From: Rebecca billardiae RCC1528
Lineage: Eukaryota > Protista > Haptophyta
Direction of reading: 5' to 3'
DNA length: 64,000 nt
NCBI GenBank assembly: GCA_965240325.2
Contig: OZ251241.1
Span: 434,001 to 498,000, forward strand
This document shows positions 26,273-49,819 of the stretch, piece by piece. Position numbers and translations under genes: made by a program. The notes under the pieces are model-generated. The model was not told the DNA's origin. It saw nothing but the letters and a program-made list of their open reading frames with translations, and did no database searches. The first letter of the stretch is position 1, and every line of letters begins with the position of its first letter.

Positions 26273-27959
26273 GCGGGCAGCGCATGCGCGGACGGGGCGC
26301 GGCGCGTGGTGACGAGGCGAGACTTGCGGTGCGGCGCGCCGTGTGGCCAGCCGGTGTGACCACGGGAGGCGGTGGCGGCGGCGGGCCTGGGCAGCGCGCG
26401 AGGGCCTGCGCCGCGGCCGCAGTGCGCGGCCGCAGGCAGACGCCTGGTGCGCGCGGCGCGCTCGCGCAGTCGGGCGCCCGCGCTCACGCAGCTAGCGACG
26501 GTCGCTGGAGGCTGCGTGTGAGCGGGCGAGTGACGAGGAGCGCGTGTCGAGATGGCACGCAGTGCTGCGTGCGCAGCGCGGCCACCTGCATGACCGCGAC
26601 TCCCGAATCACACGGGCACGGCATCGACGGCCGAGCATCGTCATTCGGGCTTGTCAAAGTCGGGCCGACGCACTGAGGCGCGCTGAATCCTGGCATGGCC
26701 TGCCGAGTCTGACTGAACGTCACGAGTGCAGCGAGTCGCGTCATAAGCTGGACCGCATACGTGGGTGGCTCGGCTACCACTCGTTCAGTCTATTCATAAT
26801 AGGAACCTAGTGCTTATCTCCTAAACCCCTGGACGGGTAAAAACGGGTCCCCCCCCCCCCCCTGTGTATTCCGGGAGGCCGCGACCACTGTCGACGCTGA
26901 GTCCGGGCGGCATCGCCAAGCGGCGGCTGGAGGAGCGACGGGCGCGTGAGCGTGGCGGCTCGCGGCTATCACCGGCCTTGTGGCACGTAGTCGCGCGTGT
27001 GCGCGCCGTCACATTGCGTGTACAACACCAGACGCTGACTCCCATGGCATTGCCACGCCCTGAAGACTGCCTCGGCACCTTGTGTCTGCGTTTAAATGCT
27101 CACGAAGCTGGCTCGCGGCGCTTGTGGCAGTGCCTAGCGTGCAAGAAGCTGCTACAAGTGGTGCCATAGCACTCAAGACCCGGCCGTCACGCATGGGGCT
27201 AGTCGGGTAGGCTAATCTGTGCTATGGGCGACCAGAAAAGCAGCTCGATCAGTGATCCATGACTCTGGAAATGTCGTGCGGCACACGCCGTTTGAAACGC
27301 GAGAGCGCGGCGCGTGCCTAACGTGACCTCTTTCAGGCGGCGTGCGGGGTCGGAAGTCCAGCGCGCGTGTACGTATGCATTGTGCATACATACCCCCACC
27401 TCCCCTAGCCATCTCATCGCGCCCAGGCTCCCCACATGTCGAGTCGGCTGGCAGGACGTGACCGCTCGGCACAAGCTCAAGCCCGCAAGTGGTTGCGCGC
27501 GCCAACCGCAAGGGCGACGAGCGAGGAGAGACATCAGCGAGCTGCTTTGTCGACGTTCCCCTACGTCTTGGGACCCGCCCCGCCCAGCGTGCCGCCACGG
27601 AACGCCCCGCAATCGACCGCTAGGACGCTCGGCGAGCACGCACCCACCGCCGCCACGGCAGCCGTCCCCCGAGCCAGGGGTGTAGGGGACAAGCCTAGTG
27701 TCAAGGATGGGCGGATGGGCGCCTGACTGCCTTGCGGCGAGAGTCACACGCACGCCATCTCACGTGACGACAGCAGAATGATCTGACAGAAGATGCCACT
27801 ACGGCCCGCCAGTGCCCGGACCACCTGGACCGGACGACCCGCTGCGTGGCGTGCAACCGCGAAAGCCTTGGCGCTGCAGGTGCAACGCGCTCCGGCAAGC
27901 TGAAAGTGTTGCAGAAGGGCTGGCGGCGAAAGAGAAGGAGAAGGGCCGCCGCCGGCCGA

Positions 27960-29690
27960 ATGCCGTCTACGCGCCGGGCGCGCGCGTCCGCCGCGCCAGC
28001 GGCGGCGGCGGAGCGCGAGGAGCCGAGCGGCAAGTCGCCCGCGCGCAAACCGCCCGGGGCGCGCGTGCGCTCGCCCGCCCAGACCGCCGCCGCGACCCGG
28101 CGCAAGCTCAAGGCGCAGGCGGGCGCGCCCGCCGTCACGATCGACTTGATCTCGCCCTCGCACGGCGCGGCCGAGGGCGCGCCGGCGGGCGCGGGCGCGG
28201 AGGATGAGGCGGAGGGCGGGGGCAGCGGGCCGCCCGCAGGCCGCCGCTCCGGCCGCCTCGCGCGCCAGGCGCGCGCCGACCCGCACGAGGTGCTGCTTGT
28301 CTACCCGGCGGTGGGCGCGCGCGGCGCGATCACGCTCACGCGCGACGACTTCGAGCGGATCCGGCCGGCGGCGACGGCTCGCGCGGTGGACACGGAGCGG
28401 CTGCGCTTCAACGACACGATCGTCGACCTGTGGCTCAAGTACGTCGAGGCCGAGACCCGCCGCACCAGCCCCGCGCACGGCGCGCGCTGCAAGTTTGTCA
28501 ACTGCTTCTTCTACAAGCGGCTGCGCGCCGAGCACGGCCGCGCGCTCGAGGGCGCCAAGGGTCGGGGCGCGGAGGCGCGCGCGCCGCCGGCGGGGCAGCT
28601 CGCGGCGACGCTCGGCTCGAAGAGCACGCTGGCCGAGTGCGCCGCCCTCTTCGAGAAGGACTTTGTCTTTGTGCCCGTGCACGAGCCGCACCGCCTGGGC
28701 GGCCACTGGACGATTGCCGTGATCTGCCATCCGGCTATGGCCGTCGAGCACGCGGTGGCGGCGGGCGCGCTGCCCGGGCCGCTGCTGCCGCACGTGCGCG
28801 CGCAGGCGGCGCGGCAGGCCTCGCAGCACGCCCACGTGCGCGACGCGCGCCCCGCGCCGTGCATCCTCTACCTCGACTCCGCCGTCGAGAACCGCTCCAA
28901 GGCGCTCTTCAGCGTGCTGCGCGCCTTTCTCGGGGACGCGTACGGCGCGCTCTGCGCCGCGGCGGAGGTGGGCGGCGGCGAGGGGGGCGGGGCGAAGGAG
29001 GAGGCGAAGGAGGAGGAGATGCCGCCGGCGCAGGACGACGAGGACGACGCGCAGGCGGAACGCGCGGCGCGCGCCGACGACGCGCCCGCGCACGCCGGCG
29101 CCGCGGAGCCGGATGGCTCAGGCGCCAACGCGGACGGCGGCAGCGGTGGCGCCGACGCCGCCGCCGACGACGACGCCGACGACGACGACGCCGACGCGCC
29201 CGCCGAGGCGGGCGCGGCGAACGGCGGCGCGGCCGGCAAGCGCGCGCTGCCGGGCGCGCAGCCACTCGCTCGCACGCTCACCGCGGCGAGCGTCGCGCCC
29301 GACGGGGCTGACGCCAACGCCGAGCCTGGCGGCGGCGGCGGCAGCGGCAGCGGCGGGCTCGGCGGCGGCGAGCGGCGCGGGAGCGGCGGCAGCGCGGCGC
29401 CCAACCCTCCGGCCGCGCCCGCTGGGCCGTCGCACCACGCGCCGCCGCCGCCGCCGCCGCTGCCGCCGCCGCCGCCGCCCGTGCACCCGTGGGCCGCCAA
29501 CGCCGCCGCGCTCCCCGCCGACGCGGGCTCGATGAGCGTCCCCGGCGACCCGGGCGGCGGGCACGGCGGCGGCGCCGCCGCCGTAGGCTCCGGCCTCGGC
29601 CTCGGCGGCGGCGGCGCGGGCGGGATGGGGAGCGGCACGGGCGGGCGCGGCACGCCGGTGCCGGGCCAGCTGCCGCTGCCGCCGCCGATG

Positions 29691-29730
<40 letters not shown>

Positions 29731-30357
29731 TCAGCGGCGGCGGCGGCGAGGGCCTCAGTCCGGGCGCGCAGCCGCCCGCGCCGCCCGCGCAGCCCGCGCC
29801 GCCGTCGATGGCTCTCGCCTCGGCGCCGCTGCCGCCCGCGCGCATGGGCCCGCCGCCGTCCGTGCGCGCGGCGCGCGCGGCGGCGCGCGACGGCTGGCCC
29901 CCGCCGCCCGCGTGCGCGCGGCTCGACTCTTTCGCCTCCGCGCCGCCGCCGCCGCCGCCCGCCGACTCTGTCTCCACACTCGGGCTCGGCCGCTCGGGCG
30001 CGCCGCACGGCCACGCGCAGCCGCCGCCCGCGACCAAGTCGACGCTGCGCTCGGGCGAGGCGGTGTCGGCGGTGGGCGCGCCGGGCGTGGAGGGCCCGAT
30101 GCGCTGGCTCCCGCCGGCGAACACGGTGGGCTCGAGCGACGGCGCCGAGCTCGCCGCGATGGGCGAGGACGGCGGCATCCACTTGCACGACGCGACCGCA
30201 GACTGGCCGCCCGCGACCGCGGATACTGACGACGCCGGCGGCGCAGCCGACGGCGACGGTGCCGCCGCCGAGCCCGTGCACGCGGCGGAGGCGGACGCGC
30301 CGGGGCTGCACGCGCGCGGTGGCGCGGAGGGCTCGGGGCTGGCGAACGGCGGCGGGC

Positions 30358-30406
<49 letters not shown>

Positions 30407-30570
30407 GCGGCGCACGGCTGGGAGCGCTCCCTCCGAGCCACGCGCGCTCATGCCCGCGCCGCCCGCGCTGCCGCTGCCGGCCGGCGGGCGGGCGCCCGCG
30501 CCGCCGCGCGTCACGCCGCCGCTGCTCACCGCGCGCGGCGCGGGCGGCGGCTCGGCGTACGGCGGCGCGT

Positions 30571-30603
<33 letters not shown>

Positions 30604-32074
30604 ACCGCGGCACAGTCTCGGTCGCCACGCCGATGATCGCCCTCGGCGCGCGCGCGGGCCTGGCGCGTGCGCGCGAGGATGAGGAGACGCACTCGGAGGC
30701 GGACGCGCGCGCGCCGACGGGCGGCGCGCCGGGCGGCGCGTGCGGCACCGCGGCGCACTCGCGCGCAGAGGGGACGACGACGGACGCGGAGGACTCGGCG
30801 CGCGCGCACGGCGGAGACGACGAAGACGACGGTGCGCGCGCGCACCGCGCGCACCGCGCTGCCTCCGCCGCGGACGCGGGCTCGGGCGGCGCGCGCGGTG
30901 AGGAGGATGCGACCAATCACGACACGGCCGACGACGACGGCGCCGCCGCCGCCGACGAGCTCGCGGGCGCGGGCGCGTTCGGCGCGCGCAGCGACTACGC
31001 CGGCCGCGCGCGCGCGCCGTCCGTGGTCGCGCGCGCCGCGGGCAGCGACGACGACGACGCGCTCACCACGGGCGGCCGCGCCGACGACGGCGCGCCCGAC
31101 TGGGAGCAGCGCGGCAGCGGCGGCGACGACGACGGCGGCGGCGCGGCGCGGCGCGACGCTCCGCCGTCGGACGCTGAGGACATGCGTGGAGAAGCCGAGC
31201 GGCGTGGCGCCGAGCGCGCGGCGCGGCGCGCGCGCGCGCCGAGCGACGGTGCCGCCGCGGCCGAGCCGGGCGGCGCGGACGCGGACGCCGACGCTGAGAC
31301 GCAGGACGGCGCTGCGGCCTGTGACACGGAGGAAGGCGGCGGCGGCGCGGCCGAGCGGGCGGAGGCGGAGGCGGAGGCGGCGGCGCAGCCGGGCGCAAAG
31401 CGAGGCGCCGCGCGCTCGCGCAAGGCGGCCGCGCGCGCGCCGAAGAGGCGGCGCGGCTCGGCGGACGGCTCGGCAGCCGCGGGCGCCGCGTGCGCGCTGC
31501 CCGCGCCCTCGTCCGCGCACTGCCCGGGCTACGTGCTCCGCCATGTGCCGCAGCAGACAAACAGCTACGACTGCGGTGCGCGCGCGCGCCGGGCCGGCCT
31601 GCCGGCCGAGCCGCGCGCGACCTCGCGCCGCCGCGCCCACTCGCGCCCGGCGCGCCCGGCGCTGATCCGTGCCGGCACCGCCGCGCGTGCGCGCGCAGGC
31701 TGCTACGCGGTGCACTTCATCGAGCTCCTCGCCGCAGGCCCTCCCAAGGATCTGACCTCGCAGGTGCGCGCGCAGGCGCCGCGCCGTGCCGTGCGCGCGC
31801 CCGCGCGCGCTGGCGCCGCGCCAGCCGGAGCGGCCGCGCCCGCGCCGGCCCGCTCAGCCGCCCTCGCCCGCGCGCGCGCGCCTGGGGCGCACAGGCCGCG
31901 CTCGACCGCGCGCTCGACCGCACGTGGTTCAAGGCGGCCGACATCGACCGCAAGCGTGACACGATGGCGGACAAGATCCTCAAGCTTATCGACAAGGCAC
32001 ACGCCGCGAGCGCAGACGCCAAGATGGTCGCGGCGACCGGCGGCCGCGCCAAGCGCGCGCGCGCGCTGCTCTGA
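27960..32074 (+). CDS. SUMO protease (peptidase C48, Ulp2/SENP6-7 type) with very large low-complexity insertion
   Basis: Motifs LLVYP..GAITLTRDD, FNDTIVDLWLKY, NCFFYKRL, LFEKDFVFVPVH, HWTIAVICHP, CILYLDS, then VPQQTNSYDCG|CYAVHFIE. Introns 31576-31698, 31764-31894. WF...DI..KR C-terminus. Confidence 0.85.
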
Positions 32075-32339
32075 GTCCGAGCCCTGGCTGAGTGAGTGAG
32101 TGGCGCGTGCGCGCGTAGTCAGCAGAGGGCGCTGCTGCGCCAGGATGATGCGCTGCATCGCCGTGGATCCGATCCGCCGCGTCTGCGCCACGGCGCCCAC
32201 GCTGCCTGACGCTGCGCGCCGTCGGCGTCCGACTACAGTCAGTGGCGCTCTGCTCAGATTCTTACGACGCGCTCTATGACGCGGTGACACTGGCTGATAT
32301 TGGCGCGCTATAATTGCTATAAAAATTCCGCGCACCATA

Positions 32340-32598: not shown

Positions 32599-35500
32599 TC
32601 ACACGCGCAGGTCTTTGTCGGAGCGCCCCCCGGGCGAGGCGGCGGCGCTGCTAGCAGCGGGGTCGTCGTCGACGGCATCCCCGGTGTCGCCCCGGTCGGT
32701 CGAGCCGCGCCGGCGGGCGGGCGGGTCCGGCGGCGGCAGCGTCAGGCTGCCATGCCGATCTCGCTCGAGGCCGATGCCGCTGCCGCCCGCGCGCACGTTG
32801 GCGGCCGTGTTGGCGGCCGTTGCGTCGCTGGCCGAGGCCGGGCGGTCACACGCGCTCACACCTCCGGCGGCGGTGTGAGAGGACACGCGCGCGCTTGACG
32901 CGCTGCCGCCATCGGCCCCGCCGTTCGATGCCGCCACGCGCATCGCCTCGGCGGTCGAGCCGCCGAGTGCGCTCAGGTTGAGCGCGCTACCGGCGGCCGA
33001 GTGCGCGGCCTCCGAGGCGGAGGCGGACGAGTCCTTCCACTCGCCCTCCTGCGCCTCGTTGGCGTTGGGGAACAGCGGCGTGTACTGGAAGACGCCCGAG
33101 TTCTTGCGAGACTGCGGCTTCGAGCTCGGGCGCTGCGGCATTCCCAGCGGCCCGATGGGCGCGTCGTGCGCCTTGCTGCTCTCGTAGGCATTGTGGAAGA
33201 TGTTGCGCAGCCGCTGCTGCTGCTGCTGCCGCTCAAAGCGCCGCTGCACGACCTCGAGCTCCGTCAGGCCCGCCGACCCGAGCCGCACGCGCGCGATGCC
33301 GGAGTCGGGCGCCGAGCTGTGCACCGAGCCGCGGCGCGAGCCCGGGCGGGAGGGCTCGGTGCTCTCGCTGTCGAGCTCAGGAGGCAGCCGCGTGTCGGGC
33401 GCTATCGACACGCGCTTACCCGTGCTGGCCGGCGACGCGTGCGACTGGGTCGGCGAGCCGAGCGCAGCAGAGCCGCGGCGCGACGTTGCCTGGCCGCTCC
33501 CGTTGCCCGAGGGCGGCATCGACGCGAGCGCAGAGCCGCGGCGCGGCGCGGCCTGGCCGCTCGCGTTGCCCGAGGGCGGCATCGACGCGCTGCACGACGG
33601 CGGCGGCGTCAGGCTGGCCGAGGCCGAGGGCGAGCGCATCGGCAGCAGCTCGACCTCCCCTCCGAGCTCCGAGGTGAGCAGGAACCGAGGCGCAAGCCGC
33701 TGCTCCCCAAACGCGGGCGTCGAGGGCATCGAGATGTCCACGTCGTCGAGCCCGGCGGCGGCGAAGCGCTCCCGGGCCGTGGGCGACGGCCCGCCGTCCT
33801 CGGCGGGCCGCAGCCCCGCGGGCGATGCGCCGGGCGAGTTGCTCACCGACCGCCGGCCGAGCAGCAGGAAGGCCGGTGACTCGCTCGGACGGCCAGAGTT
33901 GGCGGTCGACGTGTGTCCTGGGCCCGCACCAGAGAAGCGCCCGCGCAGCGTGGACGAGCCGGGGGCCGCGAAGAAGCCGCCCGGGCGCGAGGTGCGACCC
34001 GTCGGCGTGTTCGCGGCCGAGAGCCGCTCCGACGCGCGCGAGTTGCGCGAGGTGCGCGGCCGGCTCGCCGGCGTGCCGGCCGAGGCGAACCGGTCGGCGA
34101 GCGAGCCCGAGCCCGGCTCAAAGGAGACGCCCATGCCGGACCTGCGCGCGCCGCGCGCAAACGACGTGCGGGTGGACGGGCGTGCCGAGCCGGGCGGCGG
34201 CGAGGGCTCGGCGGTGTCGCCCGCGGCGGAGCGCGACGAGACTCGGCGCCGCCCGATCGACTGGCGAATCGACTGGCGCAGTGACTGGCCAGCCGACTGG
34301 CGCGTCGACTGGCGCTGCGAGCGGCGCGGCGAGCCCGTGGGCGAGCCCTCCGGCGACGGGTTGAGGCTGGAGCGCTCTGAGCCCGCCTCGTCCGTCGCGG
34401 CGACCGAGTCCGAGCGGCCGCGCTGCACCACCTTCTCCGCGCGGCGCAAGAAGTCGATCCTCGGCCGCACGTGGAAGAGCAGGTACATGTGCACCGTGTC
34501 TATCAGCGGCACGCACGCAAACAGCAGGCACGGGATCAGGATGAGCAGCCCGATCGCGCCGTCGACCATCAGCCAGTACGAGAGCAGCACGTCGCGCCCC
34601 GCCTCGCGCGTGATGCGCCACGCCCTGTGCGACCTCGCCTCCGCCGCCCTCGCCTCCGCGTCCGCGGGCGCCGCCGCCTTGGGCCCTGAGACGAACCACG
34701 CGAGCGCGGAGCACGCCGAGTGCAGCGCAAAGTACTTGGCGACAAACGACGTGAAGATGGCCTTCTCCACGACGGCGGAGCGGCGGCCGATCATCGCGGA
34801 CCAGAGGCCGTCGTACGTGCCGAGGAGCGCGAGCTGGGCCGCGTGGCAGGCGATGATCACCGGCGCGACCATCAGCGGCACCTGCCCCGCGGCGACGCGC
34901 TCGGGCTTGGCGCGGCCGCACGCCGAGCGCAGCAGCACCGCGGCCAGCGCGCCGACCGCGAGCGGCAGCACCGGCAGGAAGTTGCTGATCAGGTCGAGCA
35001 GCTCGAGGGGCCCGCGCGGCAGGCGGTGGTAGATGCCGAGGACAGCGATCGCCGCGAGCAGCCGCCGCCCCGGCGTGATGAACACGGCGTACGGCCGCCC
35101 CGCCATCGAGGCGAGCGTGCCCTCGTGCCACGCGCGCCAGCCGTCCGCCTTGGCGTCAAAGAGCCACCGCCACCAGCCCACCACGTCCTGCCGCAGGATG
35201 TCGAGCGGGCGGAACATGCGCGCGTTGAAGAGGGAGGGCGAGAGCACCCACGCCGCCACGATCAGGAAGAGCGCGCCCCAGAACGGCCAGCCCGGCCACT
35301 TGGGCGGGCGGGTGTACACGAAGAGCGCGGCCATGAAGATGAGGTCGGCGCCCGGCTGCAGGTTGGAGTGCGCGTACCCCTTGTACAGCGCGTGGTAGTG
35401 CTGCCGCGTGGTGGCGATGCCGCGGCCGGTGGCGATGTACTGCGCGCCGCCCTGCGAGATCTCCGAGCGGTAGTTGTACCCGATCAGCTGCGCCTGGAAC

Positions 35501-38500
35501 GCGAAGAACATCCACGAGAAGGAGCACAGCTGGCGCACGAGCGCGAGCACGCCGAGGAGCGGGTTCTGCGTGTTGATGGTGATCTCAAACAGCAGCGGCA
35601 GCGCCTGCCCGATGATGAAGAGCGCGGTGATCGGGCCGAACTGGCCGTCGATCAGCTCGGCGGAGATCGACGAGTACGTGAGGAGCGGGTCGGTCCCCTC
35701 CGGCGTGAACGCCATGTCCACCAGCGAGAAGTAGAGCAGGATGAAGATCAGCGTCCAGATCGTGATCTCCATGAGCGCGGGCGTGCCGTAGAAGCCGACG
35801 TGTCCGTAGAAGAAGCCGAGCATGCGCGCGAACGGGAGGCGCGAGCCGAGGCGGTACGACTGGCGCGTGAGGCACATCTCGGCGGTGCCGCGGCTCAGCT
35901 TCGAGATGAACTTGAGCTGCCCGCCGAACGACATCTCGCGCCCCTTGCCCACCTGGAAGTACTCGCGGTGGATCACGTTGTTGCCGCGCAGGCACAGATC
36001 CATCCCCGCAAAGATATCCTCGGACAGGTTGAGCGCCTTGGTCGCCTTGGAGACGCCGCCCTGCGCCATCATCGTCAGCTTCTCCATGATGTCGGGGTGG
36101 CCGTAGTACATGCGCGACAGCAGCGGCCGGTCGCTCGTGCGCTGGATCATCGAGCCGAACACGTACTCGGACGTGGCGGAGAAGTTGCCGATCGTGCCGA
36201 GCGACGAGTACACGTGCTCGCGCCAGCCGACGATCGAGACGCGCGCGCGCGAGTTGGTCGGGTCGTCGCCGAACTCGGCGAGGCCGTTGACGATCTTGAG
36301 CATCTCCTCGAGGTAGCCGTCCTGGTTCGCGTCGATGGTCTGCAGCAGCCGGCCGCGCACGTAGATGATCGCGTGGTTCTGGTTGTCGCCCTTGCCGTCG
36401 CCGAGGATCGGGTGGCCGGGCAGCCGCACGCGGTAGCGCGGCAGCCGCTTGTTGCCCGGCAGCTTCTCGCAGTGGCCGTCGATGAGGCACGAGTAGAAGA
36501 CCTTGCCCTGCGGCACGCTCGTGTCGACCTCCTCCTCGATGTACGCGACGTTCAGCCGCGGGAACTCCTGGAACATCACCTCCGTCGCCTCGAGGAACTC
36601 GGCGTCGAAGTGGAAGTAGCGCTGCATCGAGACGACGCACTGGAACTTGGTCGCGATGATGTCCTCGCGCTCGGCCGCGCCGAGGTCGGGGCGCTGGACG
36701 GAGAGCAGCAGGTCGAGCGCGCGCTCGTACAGCATCATGCCGCGCACGGTGCGGTACAGCGACTGCGTGCGCATGCTCGACCACTTGCGCAGCTCGAGCA
36801 TCGCCGCGCGCCGCTCCTCCTCGTCCGCGCCGTCGTCGTCGATCTCGGGCGGCGGCGCGTCCGCCGCCGCCTTGGCGTCCGCCTCCGAGTTGCCCGCGGC
36901 GGACGCGGCGACCTGCCGCCACAGCACGCTCCACGTGCGCTCGCCGACGCGCTCGCGGAAGCAGCGCAGCTCGTCCGGGTAGTACTCGAGCAGCAGCCCG
37001 AGCAGCGGCTGCTGCTGGCCCGCCGCGCGCGACGCGTCGTCGATTGTGAGCAGCTCGGCGACCGAGTTGATGATGGTCTCCCCGTAGTGCGGGATCAGAA
37101 CGGAGAAGGAGGGCATGGTCTCGACGGTGGCCGCGGCGGGCATGCGCATCTTGAGCGAGGCGCGCAGGAAGCCGAAGCGGCGCACCGCCTCCGGCGCGCG
37201 CGGCATCCTCGCGCGGCCGCGCCGCTCGAAGATGGGCGGGCGGTGCAGCGGCTGCGCGGCCGAGTGCACGTTCTCGTACGACAGCTCGCGCGCCTCCTCG
37301 ACCGTCAGGATGTCCGTCTCGAACATGGAGGCGATCACGGCGTTCCAGAGCAGCGCCCACTTGCGCTCGATGATCGGGTGCATCGTCGGGTACAGCAGCG
37401 CGCGCATTGGCTGCGGCCGCGCCTTGCCGTCCGTCGGGAACACCTGCGCGACGAACGCGGCCGGCAGGTCAGCCATCCGGCGCAGCGGCACCTGCGACGC
37501 CGACTTGCGCGGCCCCTGGAAGTACAGGATGCTCAGCCCGCGGAGCGTGCCGAAGATGACGCAGCCGACGATGTACCAGTGGTACGTGGACGAGAGGTAG
37601 ACGAGCATGCCCGAGATCCACACGACCAGCTGCTGCATCGAGCGCGTGAGCAGCTCGGGCGCGGCGGCGAGCTGCGGCGGCAGCGACGGGTCGGCGATGA
37701 TCCGCCCGATCGGCCGATACAGGTCGAGGCGCAGCGTGGCGATCGCCACGCCGCGGATCACGACGACGAGCTCGATCATGCCCTTCAGCCCGAAGACGAC
37801 GAGCCAGAAGAGGACGACCGCGGCCCCCGCGTACTGCGGCATGTACACGTTGTTGTCGAACTCCCTCGCCCTGCGCATGAAGGTGCCCGGGTTGAAGGTG
37901 GTGCGCAGCACGACCGCGGCCGAGTGCACGACAAACAGCGTGCGCACCGTCTCGTTCTTCGGGTACGCGAGGAAGACGGCGAAGAGGCCGAGCTGCAGCA
38001 GGTACGGCAGCGCCTTGTCCGGCTGCAGCAGCGTCTGCCAGATCGTCGCGCCCGGCTTGAGCCGCATCTTCGCGCCGTCCGCGACGATCTGCACGAGGCC
38101 GGGCGCGAGCAGGCCCGCAAAGATGGGCGCGCTGTCGGTCGGCTTCATCCACTCGCCGTCCGGCACGTACAGCTGGAGCGCGACGAGCAGCAGCATGTAG
38201 AACGAGGCGACGTGGTACGTGATGATGCGCGCGAAGCCGCCGAGCAGGTTCCACCACGCGTGGATCTCGTTGTGCCGCTTGCACCCGGCGAGCGAGGCCT
38301 TCCAGTCGACGTGGCGCAGCGCCTCCCACCGCTCCTCCTTGGGCAGCTGGATGATGGCGCGTCCGTCGTGCGTCACGATCTTGTTGATGCGCTCGTGCGT
38401 CCAGAACTGCTCGTTCCAGTCGTCGTAGTTGACGCGCGTCTCGGCGTCCTCGAGCGGCCGCTCGATCGGCGCGCCCCTCGCAGAGAGCCCCTTGAAGTTG

Positions 38501-39815
38501 TATGAGAAGAAGTACTCGTACAGCGGGCGGATGTACTCACGCAAGTAGCGAGACTCGGGCCGCGGCCCCTCGTCCTCCCTCGCCGGCCTCGTCGACTTGC
38601 GCTTCGCCTTGGGCGTCGGGATGGGCGTCGGCGCGAGCGGGTCCTTCGTCTTGTGCTCCCAGTCGTCGTCGAACGGCTCCGACTGCTCCTCGTCCTCCTC
38701 CTCCTCGTCCTCCGACTCGAGGATGGACTCGCCGCCCCACGACGGCCGCGCCGAGCGCTCGCCGCCCATCGAGGGCCGCGCAAAGCGGTACGCGTTGGTG
38801 TGCGCGCGCAGCGTGGCGAGCGACTGCGCCTCGAGCGAAGTCGCCGCGACCGAGCGGCGCGCCGAGGCCAGCCCCGAGTGACGCGCCGACCGGCGGCCCG
38901 CGTGCGGCGTCTGCGCGAGGGAGGAGCGGCCGCTGCTGTTGGCCAGCATGCTGCTGCTCGGCGGCATCGACGGCACGCCCGCTCCGGGGAGCGGTATCGC
39001 GTACATGCCGCCGGCGTTGGCGCCGCTGCGTGTCCACAGCGGGCCGCCGGGCGAGAGGGCGGGCTGGTTCGGCGCGGGCTGGCTCAGCCGAGCGTGCTGC
39101 CCGCGCGCCGACCACCTCTGCTGCGGCTCGGCCTCCATCACGCGCCACTCGTTGGGTGTGGGCGGCGCGATGACCGGCGGCGGCCGGGAGCCGACAGACG
39201 CCCGCCCGCTCGTGCCCGCCTCGGCGACGGCCAGCAGCGGCCCGCTCGGCGACGGGGAGGCGGTGGCCGCGGCGTCCTCGGCCGCCCTCGCCTGCGCGGC
39301 CGCATACGCCGCCTCCTCCGCCTTCACCGCCAGCTCCTCCGCGCTCGGCGGCGGCGGCACGTACTGGCGCGCGCACTCGAAGAAGAAGCAGAGAATCTCG
39401 GGGCAGAAGCGCACGTTACCCGCCTCGCCCCACATGCAGAGGAAGAGCGCGAGCTCGCGCAGCCGCTGCGCGTGGTTGGGCACGCGGTACTTGATGAACA
39501 CGATGTGCCGCCGCCGCTCGAACGAGTGCAGCCCCGAGCTCACGTCCAGCCAGCGCTCGAACGACTCGAAGGTGAGGTCGTGCAGCTTCTTCGCGCCGAT
39601 CAGCTCGTCCTGGTACGCCGCCGTGGTCGCCGCCCACATCTGCGTGAGGTGCACGTGCTGGTTGGCCACCGAGTCCGGGTCGAAGCCGTACATGTTCTCC
39701 AGCTCGATGAAGATCTTCGCGAGGTCGTCGATCGCCTCGCCGGAGAGGTTGGTCGCGGGCGTGTTGCCCGAGATGAGCGCCGACTCGGGCGCGCGCCGCG
39801 GCGCTTGAGCCTGCG

Positions 39816-39846
<31 letters not shown>

Positions 39847-42587
39847 GACCGGGTCGTCGTCGTGCGGCGCGTCCGCCGCGGGCGCGCCCGCCGCGACCGC
39901 CCCGGCGGGCTCCAAGCCCTCCTTCGAGGACGAGGCGAACCCCCTGCGCAGGCCATTCCCGTGCGGGTCGTCAGCGCCCGCGCGCGTGGGCACGAGTCGG
40001 TCCAGCCCGGCCTTGTCGCGCGGGCGGAGAGAGTAGCCGCGGGTCAGGCGCGCACGCGTGCGGAGCTTCGCCCTCGAGCTCACGCGCCGCGCCCTCGCCG
40101 CCGCGGCCGCGCCCAGCGCGCTCGCCCGCTTGCGCATCAGCGGGTGCGCGAGCGGGACGAGCACGCACGCCCAGCAGCACGCGACCACAGCCATCACCCA
40201 GAGCCACCACGGCTCGGGCGGGCGCTGCCAGCAGTAGCCCATCTTGCCGAGCAGCGCGCAGCACTCCGCGCCGCCGTGCACCTCCTCCGCCCACACGCGC
40301 AGCACGTGGTTCGCGCGCTGCCGAATCGAGCAGCCGCGGTACTTGCCGCCGGGCATCACGTTGAGGCACGCCTCGATGCCGGCGCTCGCGTTCACGCGCG
40401 TGTGCGTCTCGTTCATCGCGCGGTCGCACTGCAGCGCGATGATCTCCTCGAGGTCCTCGTACTTGTCGAAGGGGAGCGCCGTGCAGATCGGCTCCGCGCG
40501 CGGGACCGCCGCGAAGTCGTGGTCCGACAGGTTGCGGCACGTCCTCCCCCAGCCCACGCTGCGCGCGCGGCAGAGCGGCCCGCACCAGTCCTGCTCGCAG
40601 ATGCAGATGTGCGAGTCTGTCTCCGTGCAGTTGGCGTCCCACGAGGCGCACTGCACCTTGGTGCACGTGCCGTGCGGCCCGCAGTAGGCGGGGTCGGTCG
40701 GGTCGCACTCCTGCCCGCCGTACACGATCTCCTTGTAGTACTCCTCCTCGAGGTACGGCGTGTAGAAGACGCGGTGCTCGTGGATGAACTCGTGCGTCGG
40801 CAGGTGCGGCGGGTCGCACGTGAGCTGCTCCTTGCCCTCCTCCTGGTAGAGGCGGATGTGCTCGATCTCGTACCGCGCGGGCAGCTCGGCGCACATCTCG
40901 GCGAGCCACTCCCGGTTGTTCAGGTACTCGCCCGTCTGGTCGTCGTAGATGATGCACGTCGTGCACACGGAGCGCTTGCAGTCGACGCAGCAGTCGCACG
41001 CGTACTCGGGGCACCAGCGCCAGCCCCAGCGCGGCGCCATGTCGATGTTGAGGATGAAGTACATGGCCTCGCGCGGCATCTCGCGCGCGAGCATGGTGCC
41101 CGACATGTCGTTCGTGTACGGGTTCCCGGCCTTGTTCTTGAACGTCATCGGCCGCTCCTTCGCAATCGACCACGCCGGCACGTGGAACTGCTTGTTGTCG
41201 TCGAGCGTGAAGAAGGTGAAGCCGTCAGGGCCCGTCTTCCACTGCGCCTGCCACGTGTGCTGCTTGGAGAAGTGGGTCTCGCTGAGCATCGTGCACGCGG
41301 AGAAGGCGTCGGTGTGCATCAGGTTGCCGTGCGGGTAGTACTCGTCGCCCTGCGCGCACGCGCAGCACGGCGGGAGCAGGCGACGCGGATCGCGTGAGCG
41401 CGCGTGCGCGGACACGTGCGAGGTGAGGCGCGTACGCGCGCGCTCGCTCGCGACACGCACCCAAAACTCGTAGTTGATCGCGACGTCGTAGTACGTGCCG
41501 TACGGCTGGTACGGTCCGTCGGGGGTGGTCGTGTTCACGTCGTCCAGCCCGTACCTGTCCGCCCACGGGTACAGCTCCTCGTAGTACTGCAGCTTGACGG
41601 TGCCGTCCACGTCCGTGTAATTCTCGGGCACGCAGCCGAGCACCGGCCGCTCGAGCGCGTACTTGTGCTGCCCCGGCCCGGCCTGCACGGAGGTGCACAC
41701 GAAGGGCTGCTTCGTGCGGATGCGGCGGAGCAAGTCCGCCGGCTGCGGCCCGCAGATCCCGCGGTCGATCTTGCTCTGGTAGTCGTACAGGTAGTTTCCA
41801 GGCATCGTCTCGATGATGTCAATCTCGGGCGCGCCTCGGCCCACGCCGTAGTCGCACTTGTGCAGCTTCTGCGAGCCGAACTGGTTGGCCTCGTAATCCT
41901 TCTCCTCAGGGCACTGGTCAAAGTTGAACGGCCAGACATTGTCCGTGCTGTCCTTGAACGTCGCGCGCCCCAGGTTGCCCATCAGCCAGAAGGCGGGCCA
42001 CAGCCCGCCGACGTCGTGCCGCGCGGGCATCTGCGCCTTCAACTCCATGAAGCCCTCGGTGAAGCAGAACTTGTTCCTGCGAAGAGGCGGGGCGGGGCGG
42101 GGCGGCGGGTTGGCGGGTCGGCGGCGAGCGTGCGACGCGCGTGCACGCGCACGCTCGCGCGCGGTCCGCACCATGTCTGCATCATGGGCGTCTGATAGTA
42201 GCGCATCAGGTCCGGGTCGTACGGAGAGTACCAGTTCTCGTTGTTTGCGATGAGGACGAGCTTGCCGCCTTCGGTCCACGCGAGCGACGAGTTGTAGTAG
42301 TTGTACTGGTAGTTACTGTAGACCGGCGCGTTGAGCCCGGTCCACAGCGGGTCGTCGCCGTCGTTGAACGTGCGGTTGTCCATCTCGAACTCGTCCGAGT
42401 ACACGAGCTTGTACCGGATGCCGCGCCTGGTGATCCAGCGGGCTTCCATCGGCGTGTCCGGGTCGACGTACTCGGTCCACTCCACGGCATCCTCTGCGGC
42501 CACCCCAGGCGCCGCGCCAGGCAGCAGGAACGCGAGCAACGCCACCGCGAGGCGGCGCGGAACCCAAGCCGAGCCAGCTGCCGACAT
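32599..42587 (-). CDS. Fused KRE6/SKN1-type GH16 transglycosylase + EGF-like + FKS/callose-type 1,3-beta-glucan synthase (GT48)
   Basis: Signal peptide after ATG 42587; introns 42077-42171 and 41350-41460. SKN1-like motifs LVYSDEF..RTF.DGDDP.WT, MMQTWNKFCFTEG, GLWPAFWLMGNLGRA, GRGAPEIDIIE. FKS motifs WGEAGNVRFCPE, NYDDWNEQFW, SVLIPHYGE, LYRTVRGMM, GDGKGDNQNHA, TIDANQD.YLEE, YGHPD, LSEDIFAG, QVGKGR, plus a multi-TM region. Confidence 0.92.
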
Positions 42588-44242: not shown

Positions 44243-47200
44243 TTAGTCTTCGCGCTGCCCGCGACGCCGGACGCGCGGTGCCAGCAGAAGCTGGCGCCTG
44301 CGAGCACCGGGGCACGCCAAGTGGCACTCGTAGCTCCAGTCAGTGCTGGGGTCGTCGTCGAAGTCCCCGAGGCACTGCGTCAGCCCCTCGCAGCACTCGA
44401 TCTTGGGCCAGCTGTACTTCCACGGGTTGCCGCCCTCTTCCGTGCACGACGGCGGCGATGGCGGTGACGGCGGCGGCGACGGCGGCGAAGACGGCGCGGG
44501 GGGTGCGGACGGGAAGGGCGGCGGCGGCGAGGCGGCCGGGCACGCGTGGTGGCACTCGTAGCTGAACGGCGTGCTGTCGTCGCGGTCAAAGTCGTACAGG
44601 CACTCGACCAGCCCCTCGCAGCACTCGAGCTTGGGCCAGCCGTCCGCCCACGGGTCGCCGCCCGAGCGCGTGCAGCCCGGTGGCGACGGCGGTGCCGGCG
44701 GCGGGGACGGCGGCGCGGAGGGCGCAGGCGGCGCGTGCGGCGGCGGCGAGGCGTGCGGGCACGCCCAGAGGCACTCGAAGCTCAGCGGCGTGCTGTCGTC
44801 GCGGTCAAAGTCGTACAGGCACTCGGTGAGCCCTGCGCAGCACTCGATCTTGGGCCACTCCGCCTCCCACGGGTCGCCGCCCTCGTGCGTGCAGCGCGGC
44901 GGCGGCGAGGGCGGGCTGGAGGGCGGCGGCGGCGGGCACGGCGCGGGATCGGGGTACGCGGCGCGGCAGCCGTCCACGCCGGCCGCGCAGCAGTCGTACA
45001 TGCAGCGGCCGTGCGCGACCGCGTCGCACACGAGGTGCGCGCACAGCTCCTCCGCGCGCGCCGACTCCATCAGGCAGCACTCGGCCGGGTTGGCGCACGG
45101 CAGCGCCGGCCCGTCGCCCTCGCCGCAGCTCTCGCGCATCGCGACGAAGTGCGGGGAGGCGGCCGAGAAGAGCAGCTGCTCGTCGGCGAGCTTGGCGAGC
45201 GCCGTCGCCGTCTCGTTGCTCACGCACAGCCCCGCCGCGCCCGCCTCCGCCGTGGCGGCCTGGTGGGGCACGTACGCGTACGCATCGAACCAGTGGCCGA
45301 GCGCAGCGACTGAGCCGTCGCGCCGCGTGATGCGCAGCTGGACGCCGCCGCGCGTGATGACGACGAAGCCGAAGCCCTCGCTCGCGCCCACGTGCGTGCC
45401 GTCGTCCGTCGAGAACTCATGCGCGCCCGCGCCGAGCGGCACCCCGTCGACGAGCATCGCGCCGCCATACAGCTCAAACGTGTGCGCGCCGAGCGACCAC
45501 GCGAGCGCGCCGTTCGAGCCGGCCGCGACGCCCCAGCGGCAGTGGTACGACTGCATGCGCAGGCCGACGGCGGGCACGGTGGCGAGCTCGTACCCGCCGA
45601 AGCCCATGAAGTCGAACCGCTCCTCGCCGAACGTGGTGAAGTGCGGGTCGCCGATCGACTCGCACATCGCCGAGTTGGCGAGCGAGACGGGCGGCGCGGA
45701 CGGCGCGGGCGGCGCGGACGGCGCGGGCGGCGCCGCAGGCGCCGACGGCGGCGCCGGGCAGGTGGGCAGGCACTTGAAGGTCCACGGCGTGGTCGGGTCG
45801 GCGTCAAAGTTGCCGAGGCACTCGCGCAGCGGCGAGCAGCACGGGATCTTCGGCCAGCCCGACGCCCACGGGTTGCCGTCCGCGCCTGTGCACGTCGGCC
45901 GCTCGGGCTCTGCGTAGCAGTTGGCCGTCTCCGGGTACGCCTTCTTGCACTCGTCGACGCCCGAGGCGCAGCAGTCGTACAGGCAGCGCTCGTGCGCGAC
46001 CGGGTCGCACTCGACGTGCGCGCAGAGCTCGGCGGCGTGCGCCGTCTCCATCACGCAGCACTCCGCGCCCGGATTCGCGCACGGCGGCTCGGGCGCGTCC
46101 GCGTCCGCCTGCTCGCACGCCTGCGCCATCGCCACGAACGGCGCCGAGTCGACGTGGAAGAGCGACTCGGCCTGCGCGAGCGCGTGCCGCTCGGGCGAGA
46201 GCGGGTCGGCGCAGAGGCCGGTCGTGCCCGACTCGTCCGTCACCACCTCATCGCGCGTGCGGATGTACACGTCGTACCAGTGCGACGAGGCGAAGTCGCC
46301 CGTGCGCCGGTACAGCCGCACGCTCGTCAGCCCGCGCCGGAACTTGACTGTGTTCAGCAGCTCGCCGTCGCCGCCCAGCTCGAGCACGGCGCCGTCGTTG
46401 AGCTTGTGCTCGCACGACGAGCGGAGGACGGCGTGCGGCCCAGCCTTGCGCGCGGCGGCCTCCTGCAGGAAGAACTCGGGCGGCTCGCCGTCGATCAGCA
46501 GCTGCTCGCCGTACAGCTCGTACGTGTGCTTGCCGAGCGTGAACGCGACCGCCGTGTTGGACGAGGCGGCGAGGCCCCAGCGGCACTGGTACGCGTGCAC
46601 GCGCAGGCCGACCTCCGGGACGTGCGCGAGCTCGTACGTGCCGACGCCCTGAAAGTCGTACCGCGCGCCGTCGAACGTCTGGATGTGCGGGTCGCCCACC
46701 GACTCGCACACCGAGATGCCCGCCGGGATGGCGGGCGGCGACGAGGGCGCGGGCGGCGCGGACGGCGCGGGCGGAGCGGACGGCGCGGGCGGCGCGGACG
46801 GCGCCCAGAGCGCGGCGCAGTCGGCGTGGCAGCGGTAGACGGGCACGGTGCCCGGCCCGTCGAAGAAGTAGAGGCACTCGTCCGTCCCCGCGCAGCACGG
46901 CCGCAGCGCGCCCGTCGCGTACGGGTCCTCGCCCTCCAGCGTGCACAGCGCCGACTCCGGCCGGATGGCATTGCACGACTCAAGGCAGAGGAAGCCGGCG
47001 ACGCCGTCGCCGTCGAAGTCGCCGAGGCACATCTCGAGGTCGGCACAGCAGAGCCGCTGCGCGCCCGACGCCCACGGATCGCCGCCTTGGCCCGTGCACA
47101 TGTCCGAGTGCGGCGGGCGCGCGCAGTCCTCGAGGCAGAGGAAGCTCGAGACGCCGTCCGAGTCCCAGTCCGACTTGCACTCGGTGAGGCCCTCGCAGCA

Positions 47201-47323
47201 CTTGGCGTGGGTCTCGCTGAACCATGGGTTCTGGCCGGACGGCGTGCACGCCGCCGCAGCGGCGCCACCCGCGCTCGATGCGCAGAGCACGAGTGCGAGG
47301 TGGATGGAGGACGCGCGCGCCAT
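44243..47323 (-). CDS. Secreted protein with two VWD (GDPH) domains, seven six-cysteine repeats and Pro-rich linkers
   Basis: Signal peptide MARASSIHLALVLCASSAGG; CESVGDPHIQTFDG..YDFQG.G.Y and CESIGDPHFTTFGE..FDFMG.G.Y, each followed by a Cys-rich C8-like region (C.YDCCA); (PPAPSA)n linkers. Single exon. Confidence 0.88.
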   Translation of the reverse strand: MARASSIHLALVLCASSAGGAAAAACTPSGQNPWFSETHAKCCEGLTECKSDWDSDGVSSFLCLEDCARPPHSDMCTGQGGDPWASGAQRLCCADLEMCLGDFDGDGVAGFLCLESCNAIRPESALCTLEGEDPYATGALRPCCAGTDECLYFFDGPGTVPVYRCHADCAALWAPSAPPAPSAPPAPSAPPAPSSPPAIPAGISVCESVGDPHIQTFDGARYDFQGVGTYELAHVPEVGLRVHAYQCRWGLAASSNTAVAFTLGKHTYELYGEQLLIDGEPPEFFLQEAAARKAGPHAVLRSSCEHKLNDGAVLELGGDGELLNTVKFRRGLTSVRLYRRTGDFASSHWYDVYIRTRDEVVTDESGTTGLCADPLSPERHALAQAESLFHVDSAPFVAMAQACEQADADAPEPPCANPGAECCVMETAHAAELCAHVECDPVAHERCLYDCCASGVDECKKAYPETANCYAEPERPTCTGADGNPWASGWPKIPCCSPLRECLGNFDADPTTPWTFKCLPTCPAPPSAPAAPPAPSAPPAPSAPPVSLANSAMCESIGDPHFTTFGEERFDFMGFGGYELATVPAVGLRMQSYHCRWGVAAGSNGALAWSLGAHTFELYGGAMLVDGVPLGAGAHEFSTDDGTHVGASEGFGFVVITRGGVQLRITRRDGSVAALGHWFDAYAYVPHQAATAEAGAAGLCVSNETATALAKLADEQLLFSAASPHFVAMRESCGEGDGPALPCANPAECCLMESARAEELCAHLVCDAVAHGRCMYDCCAAGVDGCRAAYPDPAPCPPPPPSSPPSPPPRCTHEGGDPWEAEWPKIECCAGLTECLYDFDRDDSTPLSFECLWACPHASPPPHAPPAPSAPPSPPPAPPSPPGCTRSGGDPWADGWPKLECCEGLVECLYDFDRDDSTPFSYECHHACPAASPPPPFPSAPPAPSSPPSPPPSPPSPPSCTEEGGNPWKYSWPKIECCEGLTQCLGDFDDDPSTDWSYECHLACPGARRRQLLLAPRVRRRGQRED

Positions 47324-47626
47324 CCTCACGAGCCTTGAGCTTGCTTCACGTCGTCAACCCGCGGCCGCGCCAACTCGGACCGTCGTCAGTACCAAGGGCG
47401 GTTCAGTACCTATGTGCAGTTTGTATTCGTGACGTTACCACCTCTTTACCCCCCCCCCATTATTCGATCGGCGAACCGTTGGGCTCCGGGTAGGTTTATG
47501 AAGGCGCCAAGATTGCGATCTCAGCTAAAAAAGGTCGGTCGATCTCCCTCGATCTTTCTGATAAGCGGGCGCGTTCTCGGCGGCGCCAGTGACCGTAAAC
47601 GCTCTCCCCCCTCGCCGACGTGCGAG

Positions 47627-49819
47627 ATGCGCGAGCTCGCTGCGCTCGTCCTCGCGGCGCTCGCTGCCGCGCCCACCCACGCGCTCTGGGCGCTCGACAC
47701 GGACTCGTCCCGCCAGTCCGCCGTGCGCACCGCGCTCGGCAAGTCGGCGGTGCGGCTGACGAGTGAGGCGTGCGGCGCGCGCGCCTCGCGGCTGGCATCC
47801 TCCGACGCGCTCGCCTTTTTCGAGGCGAGCGCGCCGCTTTTCTTTAGCGACATCGCGGCGCAGAACGTGATCGGCTCGAGCTCCTTCTCCTCCGCGTCCA
47901 CGTGGATCGCCGGCAACCTGCACCCGCGCTCGATCCGCGCGCTGCCCGGCGCGGGCGCGGACGAGGTCGTGCTCGACGTCGCGGACATGGACGACGCGTG
48001 GCCGTCGTCGTACCTGATCGACGTGTACCACTTCGCCGTCGGGCTCGAGCTGCTCGCGCGGCACAACCGCCGCGCGCTGTACGTCGCCGAGCTCACCGAG
48101 GAGCGCGCGTGGGCGAGCGTCTTCGCCTTTGTCTCCTCGTACGCGCACGCGATGGAGCGGCACGCGACGTCGGCGCCGCCCGCGAGCGACTACGCGGTGA
48201 GCGCGGCGACGGCGCGCGATGGCGCGCTGCCCACGCTGCTCGACTCCGTCTCGCGCGAGCCGCTACCCACCGCGCGCGCCGCGCTGCTCTCGCAGCTCGC
48301 GTGCTCGTGGAGCGGCGGCCGCGGGTTGCGCACGCCGAGCGCGAGCGCCTTGCACGCGGTCGAGTGCGGCCCGGCAAACCACGCGCTGGGCGACGTGGAC
48401 GCGGCGACGGCGGCGCAGGTCTCCGCCGCCGTCGCGCACTACGCCGAGCACGCCTGCCCGGACTGCGCCACCGCGCCCGACTTCCCATCCGCGTTCACCG
48501 TGCTGGACGTCGCCGAGTGGCGCGAGGACGCGGACGGCAGCGAGGGCGCGCTTGCGTTCGCGCTGCTGCTCCGGGGCGCGCCGGCGGCCGGGAACGTGCT
48601 GCTCGAGGCGCGGCTGCAGGGCACGCCCGCCCCCGCGCCGAGCGCGCCGGGGTACGTCGCCGACGCCGTGCGCGCCGGGCTCCCCTCCAACGCCGAGCGC
48701 GTCGCGCTCGCGCGCCGCGCAGCCCTCATCCACCCGGACGTGTACACGGGCTGGCTGTCTCTGCCTGACAGCGCGTGCGCCGCGCGGCTGCCGCGCTGGG
48801 CGGCGGAGGGCGGGTGCAGCTTCAGCGTCAAGGAGATCACGCCGCGCGAGCGCGCCTTCGACATCGAGATGATCGACTCGGCCGCCAAGCTCGCCCACGC
48901 CGCGCAGCAGTGGGGCATGGTCGTCGCGGCCGCGCACGCGCGCGCGGACAACGAGGCGGCTGCGCCGATCGGCACGCTGGTCGGCGCCTCTCTCGAGGAG
49001 CGCGTGCGCACGCTCGTGCCGTCGCACCGGCGCACCAGCTTCTCCACCGAGGTGGCCTCGTTCGCCGCGGCGTACGCGGACCAGGTCGAGCGCGACTTCG
49101 CGCAGTGGAAGGAGCGCGGCGGCGCGGCGGCGCTCTGCGGCGCGGGCAGCGGCGGCGACGGCGGCGGCACGAGCAGCAGCGGCGGCAGCGACTCGAGCGG
49201 CGGGCAGGACTCTGGCCGGGGCTCGGATGAGGAGGGCGACGACGACGACAACGACTCCCCGGAGATCGGTGCGAACGCGACGCATCTCGAGGCGCTGGAG
49301 TCTGAGCTGGAATGGCAGCGCAGCCTGCTCGTCGGGCTGGGCGTGGGGCTCACCCTTGCGCTGTGCGTGCTGTGTCTTGTCGGCCTGGTGCTGTGCGCCC
49401 CGCGTCGCGCCAAGAAGCTCGGCCTGCCCAGCCCGAGGAGCGGGCTGGGGCGGTTGCGCAAGCAGTCGCAGCAGCTGCCCACCCTCGAGGGGCAGCCGCC
49501 CGCAGGCGGCGTGCTGCCCTTGCGCTCTGGCGGCCGCGAAGTCGAGATGGCGGAGCAGGCGGGCGGCGGCAGCGGCGACGAGCTCGGGCAGGCCGAGGAG
49601 GCGAAGACGCCGCTGGCGCGCTCCATGCACTCGCGCCGGAGCGAGGCGGCCCCGTACGAGGAGATGACCGCGGCCGAGCGCGCGGTGGCGGCTGCCGCGG
49701 ACAACGCGTCGGCCGAAGCTGCCGCCTTGCAGGCGGCTGCGGCGGCGTCGGCATCCAACGCCGCCCTATACAGCAACAAGGGGAGACTCACCACTCTTGA
49801 GCCGCCCTTGCGCGTGTGA
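47627..49819 (+). CDS. DUF2252-like (kinase/APH-fold) type I membrane protein
   Basis: Signal peptide MRELAALVLAALAAAPTHA. Motifs ALAFFEASAPLF, WIAGNLHP, VVLDVADMDDA...YLID..FAVGL, NAERV, GMVVAAAHARAD, FAAAYADQVERDF. One TM at ~49325-49395. Confidence 0.72.
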   Translation: MRELAALVLAALAAAPTHALWALDTDSSRQSAVRTALGKSAVRLTSEACGARASRLASSDALAFFEASAPLFFSDIAAQNVIGSSSFSSASTWIAGNLHPRSIRALPGAGADEVVLDVADMDDAWPSSYLIDVYHFAVGLELLARHNRRALYVAELTEERAWASVFAFVSSYAHAMERHATSAPPASDYAVSAATARDGALPTLLDSVSREPLPTARAALLSQLACSWSGGRGLRTPSASALHAVECGPANHALGDVDAATAAQVSAAVAHYAEHACPDCATAPDFPSAFTVLDVAEWREDADGSEGALAFALLLRGAPAAGNVLLEARLQGTPAPAPSAPGYVADAVRAGLPSNAERVALARRAALIHPDVYTGWLSLPDSACAARLPRWAAEGGCSFSVKEITPRERAFDIEMIDSAAKLAHAAQQWGMVVAAAHARADNEAAAPIGTLVGASLEERVRTLVPSHRRTSFSTEVASFAAAYADQVERDFAQWKERGGAAALCGAGSGGDGGGTSSSGGSDSSGGQDSGRGSDEEGDDDDNDSPEIGANATHLEALESELEWQRSLLVGLGVGLTLALCVLCLVGLVLCAPRRAKKLGLPSPRSGLGRLRKQSQQLPTLEGQPPAGGVLPLRSGGREVEMAEQAGGGSGDELGQAEEAKTPLARSMHSRRSEAAPYEEMTAAERAVAAAADNASAEAAALQAAAAASASNAALYSNKGRLTTLEPPLRV

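Follow-up and report, generated by a model that had tools for sequence, protein, structure and literature searches.

The stretch analysed here, called the window throughout, comprises 64,000 nucleotides of the haptophyte Rebecca billardiae RCC1528 (contig OZ251241.1, positions 434,001 to 498,000 of the forward strand). Its minus strand encodes a protein that combines, from the N- to the C-terminus, a Kre6/Skn1-type domain of glycoside hydrolase family 16 (GH16), a Cys-rich stalk, one transmembrane (TM) helix and an Fks1-type beta-1,3-glucan synthase of glycosyltransferase family 48 (GT48) (Table 1). This is very probably a genuine fused gene in which both catalytic centres are intact.

The listing of open reading frames (ORFs) contains a stop-free minus-strand ORF of 3,226 aa (32599..42279), and translation of the other frames reveals an upstream exon that opens at ATG 42587 and carries a signal-peptide-like start and the initial GH16 strands. 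Splicing of intron 1 restores the motif QTWNKFCFTEG (QxWNKFCFTEG), which is common to the window protein and its orthologue P0001, encoded by a complete ORF of an MMETSP transcript. Intron 2 is missing in P0001 at a conserved aromatic-GD junction, NY(E/W)F-GD, and the residues joined by both splice junctions are contiguous and conserved in this orthologue. An earlier note on this DNA had proposed one spliced ORF of about 3,260 aa with the GH16-GT48 junction inside a single uninterrupted exon; the model of three exons and two GT..AG introns, with the junction in exon 3, agrees with it in both respects.

Spurious ORFs are common in a genome this rich in GC, hence GC content was measured by codon position. 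At third positions (GC3) it is 0.89-1.00 in each 100-codon segment of the gene model, and at second positions (GC2) it ranges from 0.36 to 0.80 along the model; the two introns have an overall GC of 0.77-0.83 and the flanks of 0.52-0.57. GC3 is 0.96-0.99 on both sides of the GH16-GT48 junction and 0.96 in the TM helix and the linker that follows it. Since GC3 is this high throughout exon 3, the junction lies inside one coding exon. One could still suppose that the long ORF is an artefact, either of two adjacent genes read through in GC-rich DNA, where stop codons are scarce, or of a chimeric assembly, as long spurious ORFs are abundant here (one of this type, 1,261 aa long, lies on the strand opposite the gene) and no RNA run is listed for the genome. 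However, the codon-position bias is steady over the junction (GC3 0.96-0.99 vs GC2 0.4-0.65), stalk, TM helix and linker keep their positions in the orthologues found in transcriptomes and in independent metagenomes, and the topology needs a TM helix, which is found exactly between both enzymes. We regard an artefact as highly improbable and treat the locus as one fused gene.

Ectodomain and predicted topology

In Pfam the long ORF matches SKN1_KRE6_Sbg1 at 9e-36, and each exon taken alone exceeds the cut-off of 30 bits (exon 1 59, exon 2 85 and exon 3 53 bits), with collinear profile positions (95-173 at 3e-16 in exon 1, 191-294 at 5e-24 in exon 2, 436-478 in exon 3). The earlier note had claimed a KRE6/SKN1-like GH16 with an intact EIDIIE motif; the family assignment stands (GH16_2 of CAZy in PMC7965971), and the motif lies at exactly the position given there. 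An AlphaFold2 (AF2) model of the P0001 ectodomain (P0001:18-670), built on an alignment of 17 family members, has a predicted local distance difference test score (pLDDT) of 75.7 and a predicted template-modelling score (pTM) of 0.80. When this model was compared with the PDB by Foldseek, GH16 laminarinases came first (4dfs, 3azx, 2vy0; E ~1e-15, target template-modelling score 0.73-0.78), and ExDxxE sits on a beta-strand (model residues 189-196). The predicted fold is a GH16 beta-jelly-roll, the modelled orthologue being 54-60% identical to the window ectodomain.

Such a fold may also be read as that of a hydrolase which trims or releases the nascent chain, in chain-length control or primer release, instead of a 1,6-branching transglycosylase. 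Every one of the nearest solved structures is an endo-beta-1,3-glucanase (laminarinase), ExDxxE is common to hydrolases and transglycosylases of GH16, and transglycosylase activity of the Kre6 type is 'suspected', not demonstrated (PMC7965971; PMC13612389). Pfam, in contrast, puts the domain in the SKN1/KRE6 family and gave no match of the window protein to the laminarinase model PF00722, and loss of Kre6, Ghs2 or PhTGS cuts branched or 1,6-glucan while chains are not lengthened (PMC13612389; PMC10543733). A hydrolytic role thus seems unlikely to us, and we take a Kre6-type transglycosylase as the likelier reading.

The N-terminus has a signal-peptide-like hydrophobic core (aa 13-31) after an Arg-containing start, and besides it aa 727-745 form the only hydrophobic segment ahead of the synthase. 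The ectodomain contains 33 Cys and eight N-glycosylation sequons. Charges around the TM helix are distributed asymmetrically: the 30 residues that follow it contain 9 K/R and 0 D/E, the 30 that precede it 2 K/R and 4 D/E. Taken together, signal peptide, single TM helix and charge asymmetry indicate that the protein is oriented N-out, C-in. In Fks1 the corresponding N-terminal and GT domains lie in the cytosol (PMC10499315), and because one TM helix separates the enzymes, the GH16 would lie on the side that receives the synthase product. A topology in which the GH16 is non-cytosolic, on the same side as glucan export, is thus supported as a prediction, in line with the signal peptide, the one TM helix and the lumenal GH16 that had been proposed before.

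The glucan synthase module

Both synthase families were recovered well above their Pfam cut-offs, FKS1_dom1 at 4e-18 (66 bits vs 27; two stretches of the ORF, split by an insert) and Glucan_synthase (PF02364) at 4e-163 (545 bits vs 37.2; ORF aa 1693-2378). Yeast Fks1 (7xe4 and others) aligns with an E-value of 6.5e-136 over Fks1 residues 299-1510. We compared 15 active-site or function residues of Fks1 taken from PMC10499315 (E851, D1080, K1082, D1102, N1104, E1155, K1172, E1173, H1195, N1220, E1221, D1222, K1246, R1248 and K1261), and 13 of them are identical in the HMMER alignment. The two changes are N1220 to S, which gives the SED motif (36001-36027), and K1172 to S, a position that is likewise Ser in P0001 and P0003; QVGKGR is found at 35932-35955. 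Domains and residues bear out the complete FKS1-type synthase with SED and QVGKGR that the earlier note had described. Hydropathy peaks stand on both sides of the GT domain (aa 1384-1621 and 2203-2627) in a scan that is crude and not a TM predictor.

The insert that splits FKS1_dom1 is missing in P0001, P0002 and yeast Fks1. Codon-position GC of the insert (GC3 0.96 vs GC2 0.65) and of the C-terminal tail (GC3 0.89-0.95) argues that both are coding. Five RRxS motifs (four RRGS, one RRVS) occur in the tail. It also holds a duplicated stretch of ~21 aa.

Table 1. Features of the fused gene and its neighbours in the window.
Feature	Position	Strand	Basis
Whole gene, ATG to stop, 3 exons, spliced product 3,260 aa	32599..42587	-	ORF listing and frame translation
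Exon 1: signal-peptide-like N-terminus (aa 1-31, about 42495-42587) and first GH16 part	42172..42587	-	
Intron 1, 95 nt, GT..AG, phase 2	42077..42171	-	
Exon 2: GH16 core with catalytic strand	41461..42076	-	
GH16 catalytic motif ExDxxE = EIDIIE, aa 223-228	41809..41826	-	
Intron 2, 111 nt, GT..AG, in frame, stop-free	41350..41460	-	
Exon 3, 8.75 kb: GH16 end, stalk, TM, linker, entire GT48 synthase, tail, stop	32599..41349	-	
Cys-rich extracytosolic stalk (predicted), 17 Cys in aa 541-725	40213..40761	-	
EGF-like Cys cluster within stalk	40570..40707	-	Cys pattern only
Single TM helix, aa 724-748, predicted N-out/C-in	40138..40212	-	Positive-inside rule
Cytosolic Ala/Arg-rich linker (predicted), no Pfam family	39577..40137	-	
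Fks1-type N-terminal cytosolic domain FKS1_dom1	38182..39465	-	Pfam
Low-complexity Ala/Pro/Ser/Glu-rich insert of ~270 aa splitting FKS1_dom1	38545..39357	-	
GT48 Glucan_synthase catalytic domain	35146..37203	-	Pfam, 545 bits
Donor-site motifs ILGDGKGDNQNH and TIDANQD (Fks1 D1080, K1082, D1102, N1104)	36319..36408	-	
Acceptor-site motifs LSEDIFAGM and QVGKGREM (Fks1 E1221, D1222, K1246, R1248)	35932..36027	-	
C-terminal hydrophobic segments, putative glucan channel and C-terminal TMs	34501..35775	-	Kyte-Doolittle scan only
600-aa Ser/Ala/Gly/Arg/Pro-rich tail, cytosolic (predicted), disordered, no Pfam family	32602..34401	-	
ORF of 1,417 aa with Ulp1 (Peptidase_C48) domain, just downstream of the fused gene	27846..32099	+	
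Upstream same-strand neighbour, ~1,036 aa, von Willebrand factor type D (VWD) domain	44246..47353	-	
Strongly GC3-biased ORF, DUF2252 (1.5e-35)	47339..49816	+	

Orthologues and the A-type family

Relatives were searched with the GH16 part as query, candidates being restricted to full-protein length. The search yielded four long proteins, P0001-P0004, which are 32-48% identical and combine the three Pfam families. P0002 and P0004 span transcript-like JGI contigs (7.5 and 8.0 kb) whose untranslated ends are short, and P0003 is a single ORF on a 19-kb metagenome contig. Two short GH16 hits of the same clade, P0136 and P0137, lie directly upstream of ORFs with FKS1_dom1 and Glucan_synthase on the same strand of Tara/ENA contigs. 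Using the gene model in tblastn, we found collinear GH16-stalk-GT48 matches in L001-L007, of which L003 terminates in a short A run and L004-L007 are Tara contigs. P0150, a fragment named Prymnesium polylepis, falls in the same GH16 group (59-67% identity to P0134 and P0136), and its label provides a named haptophyte for this group. The protein atlas, searched with the GT48 part, returned generic glucan-synthase clusters only, without useful taxa.

A common trait of these proteins is the connector. In the window protein, P0001, P0002 and P0003 there are 16-23 Cys between GH16 and FKS1_dom1, followed by one TM helix, and P0004 has a single TM helix at this position, too. The gene belongs to a fusion family of haptophyte-like marine protists, which we call A-type. 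ExDxxE is kept in all A-type fusions and in most of the oomycete fusions, described below, with which they were compared.

Oomycete fusions and phylogeny

A single polypeptide with GH16 and GT48 has been noted for oomycetes and was called restricted to them (PMC13612389, citing Judelson 2017 and Morris 2009). The word 'glucan' is absent from the main text of Morris 2009 (PMC2705460), hence the oomycete record rests on PMC13612389 and on database proteins. The search with the GT48 region found many oomycete proteins with PF03935, PF14288 and PF02364 (Phytophthora, Plasmopara, Aphanomyces) that are named merely 1,3-beta-glucan synthase or GT48 protein in databases, among them Phytophthora sojae P0051 ('putative glycosyl transferase family 48 protein'), Aphanomyces invadans H310_02652 (P0046) and Plasmopara halstedii P0052. 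The background of the earlier note, that the two enzymes are separate proteins in fungi and diatoms, was thus incomplete, the fusion being on record for oomycetes and common in their protein sets. The proteins from MMETSP, Tara and the window in turn contradict the oomycete-only claim of PMC13612389.

Oomycete and window proteins share the order SKN1 (N-terminal), FKS1_dom1, Glucan_synthase, and the former are of similar size (2,400-2,640 aa) with a signal-like N-terminus and an intact ExDxxE. However, identity between them is 24-27% in GH16 and about 35% in GT48, and the connectors are unlike. In oomycetes the GH16 is immediately followed by hydrophobic segments, five to seven in number, that match TM7S3/TM198 weakly, whereas the window protein has a Cys-rich stalk and one TM helix in place of a multi-TM block. 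In the literature searched we found no description of the fusion in haptophytes, and the A-type, with another connector and another synthase lineage, seems to be undescribed. The novelty that had been expected therefore has to be narrowed: the GH16-GT48 architecture as such was already known from oomycetes, while the type found in the window differs in GT48 clade and connector.

A GT48 tree of the catalytic core (49 rows, quick search) divides into two major clades with 99 support in the Shimodaira-Hasegawa-like approximate likelihood ratio test (SH-aLRT). The first clade unites the window, P0001-P0004 and P0016 with dinoflagellate stand-alone enzymes and Allomyces. The second contains plants, oomycete stand-alone enzymes, a haptophyte stand-alone enzyme of Calcidiscus and the Ectocarpus GT48, which stands beside the oomycete fusions. 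The GH16 tree (120 rows, unrooted, without fungal outgroups) places the window in a clade of 99 SH-aLRT that holds only fusion-linked sequences, every checkable member being linked to GT48; the GH16 domains of oomycete fusions form their own separate supported clade in this unrooted tree. A single ancient fusion, with later fissions in several lineages and a replaced connector, would account for the identical domain order. It would also suit the position of both fusion GH16 groups outside the big stand-alone ochrophyte TGS clade, because a root placed there would unite them. Yet the GT48 cores fall into both major clades, each with stand-alone enzymes, and forcing all fusions into a single GT48 clade, a group named post hoc, costs 382 log-likelihood (lnL) units and is rejected by the approximately unbiased (AU) test (p 4e-6). 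The unlike connectors speak against common descent as well, so that we consider it rather improbable. Since GT48 clades and connectors differ, it is likely from these comparisons that two independent fusions took place.

Some related GT48 proteins carry further modules. P0016 (EukProt record SAG31_NODE_79), a fusion in the window's GT48 clade, adds a domain that binds cyclic nucleotide monophosphates (cNMP; PF00027); we take SAG31 to be a Picozoa single-cell genome. P0019, another relative, carries PDZ domains, and no SKN1 domain is recorded for it. P0017 (ENA, 4,493 aa) has GT48-core matches over residues 1704-4479 and may contain two synthase modules. It is speculation that the RRxS motifs in the tail of the window protein point to phospho-regulation, as may the cNMP-binding and PDZ domains of P0016 and P0019.

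Locus surroundings

None of the neighbouring genes is related to the glucan fusion: one encodes a VWD-domain protein, another a DUF2252 protein, and the third is an ORF for a Ulp1-type peptidase. GC reaches 0.81-0.83 at 30000-32000, within the stretch of the Ulp1 ORF, and a mobile element may be its source. DUF2252 is described as conserved in bacteria, and its copy in this algal nuclear context may be an old horizontal transfer.

Discussion

For fungi and algae alike, it is a problem of long standing how beta-1,6 linkages and branches are introduced into beta-glucans. We propose that the window gene probably encodes a bifunctional single-gene membrane enzyme that couples glucan synthesis and remodelling. 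The signal peptide would direct the N-terminus into the secretory pathway, and the Kre6/Skn1-type GH16 would remain lumenal or extracellular together with the disulfide-rich stalk. The single helix would span the membrane and be followed by the Fks/callose-synthase-type GT48 module, whose N-terminal and catalytic domains would be cytosolic. If it works as Fks1 does, the GT48 may polymerise UDP-glucose into beta-1,3-glucan and extrude it via its own TM channel to the GH16 side, where the tethered GH16 could work in cis on the emerging chain. The likeliest action of the GH16 would be transglycosylation, that is branching or cross-linking as proposed for Kre6, Ghs2 and TGS, and trimming is possible. 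We lean towards the view that the GH16 acts in cis to branch the growing glucan or otherwise remodel it. Both activities are inferred from architecture and analogy, as are the type of linkage, the product and the membrane in question, be it the plasma membrane or that of the vacuole.

Several points weigh against such a coupled enzyme. Its action in cis is argued purely from architecture, and no biochemical activity has been established for any Kre6-type domain. The fold prediction is that of the orthologue P0001 (54-60% identical). In the stalk, the Cys cluster at 40570-40707 that the earlier note had called EGF-like is present, but there is no Pfam EGF match at E<=0.1, and the label describes a Cys pattern only. 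The ~270-aa insert and the 600-aa tail are low-complexity sequences unique to this protein and could conceal unrecognised in-frame introns. RNA runs were looked for and none is listed for the genome, which does not mean that none exists.

The next question is which glucan would be made. Since a stand-alone GT48 and, for storage glucan, a stand-alone Kre6 homologue also occur in haptophytes, the fused family may serve another glucan. It could act at the plasma membrane and make a glucan associated with the cell surface or with scales, with storage glucan left to the stand-alone GT48 and TGS. The haptophyte stand-alone GT48 (Calcidiscus P0065) falls in a clade with the Ectocarpus GT48, a relationship tied to the synthesis of storage glucan/chrysolaminarin (PMC7965971), and in Pleurochrysis a stand-alone 64-kDa Kre6 homologue is needed for storage glucan (PMC10543733). 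The window GT48 core, for its part, clusters with enzymes of dinoflagellates and Allomyces and with other fusions, and a Cys-rich stalk with eight N-glycosylation sequons resembles a cell-surface ectodomain. However, no beta-glucan wall has been described for haptophytes (PMC10543733), and the vacuolar lumen is topologically equivalent, so that the architecture fits either site. A surface glucan is thus a serious candidate, somewhat short of probable. We are more doubtful about the further idea that haptophyte-like marine protists independently evolved the A-type enzyme and that this enzyme, not the stand-alone GT48, builds the unusual 1,6-rich haptophyte beta-glucan.

That abundant marine algae have a second fusion, structurally distinct and probably of separate origin, makes GH16-GT48 coupling look general. 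If the more doubtful idea just named were true, nature would have made the fusion twice by convergence, a Rosetta-stone proof that synthases and Kre6-type remodelers are one physical unit across eukaryotes. A single polypeptide fixes stoichiometry and topology and would be well suited for expression, structural work and linkage analysis. There is also a consequence for studies of algal carbon storage, as surveys that handle GT48 and GH16 as separate families would double-count or miss fusion synthases.

The coupled enzyme proposed here has counterparts in several known systems. In S. pombe the GH16 protein Ghs2 and the GT48 synthase Bgs3 are an obligate module for branched glucan (PMC13612389, Nat Commun 2026); the same study points to the oomycete fusion as a parallel confined to one lineage. 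Like this pair and Kre6/Skn1 with Fks1 in S. cerevisiae, the window protein joins a Kre6-type GH16 to a GT48, a partnership that in the fungi yields branched or 1,6-containing glucan, and it shares the Fks1 catalytic residues with the fungal synthase. The fungal pair, however, consists of two polypeptides where the window gene encodes one, and fungal Kre6 is a type II protein (cytosolic N-tail, TM helix, C-terminal GH16), whereas the window GH16 is predicted to be a type I ectodomain and departs from the fungal topology. A GT48 joined to a substrate or product partner is likewise found in the fusions of GT48 with a major facilitator superfamily (MFS) transporter in oomycetes and hyphochytrids (P0055, P0125; PMC5795050), which have been discussed for Pseudofungi (PMC5795050); there the partner is an MFS/sugar transporter and in the window a glycoside hydrolase. 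Closest in layout are TGS1/2 of Phaeodactylum and PhTGS of Pleurochrysis, with a signal peptide, SKN1, one TM helix and a cytosolic C-terminus (PMC10543733; PMC2173943). The N-terminal 750 residues of the window protein have exactly this layout, although its GH16 falls in a clade separate from the stand-alone TGS (99 SH-aLRT). Where the cytosolic part of TGS is a short tail, that of the window protein is an entire glucan synthase.

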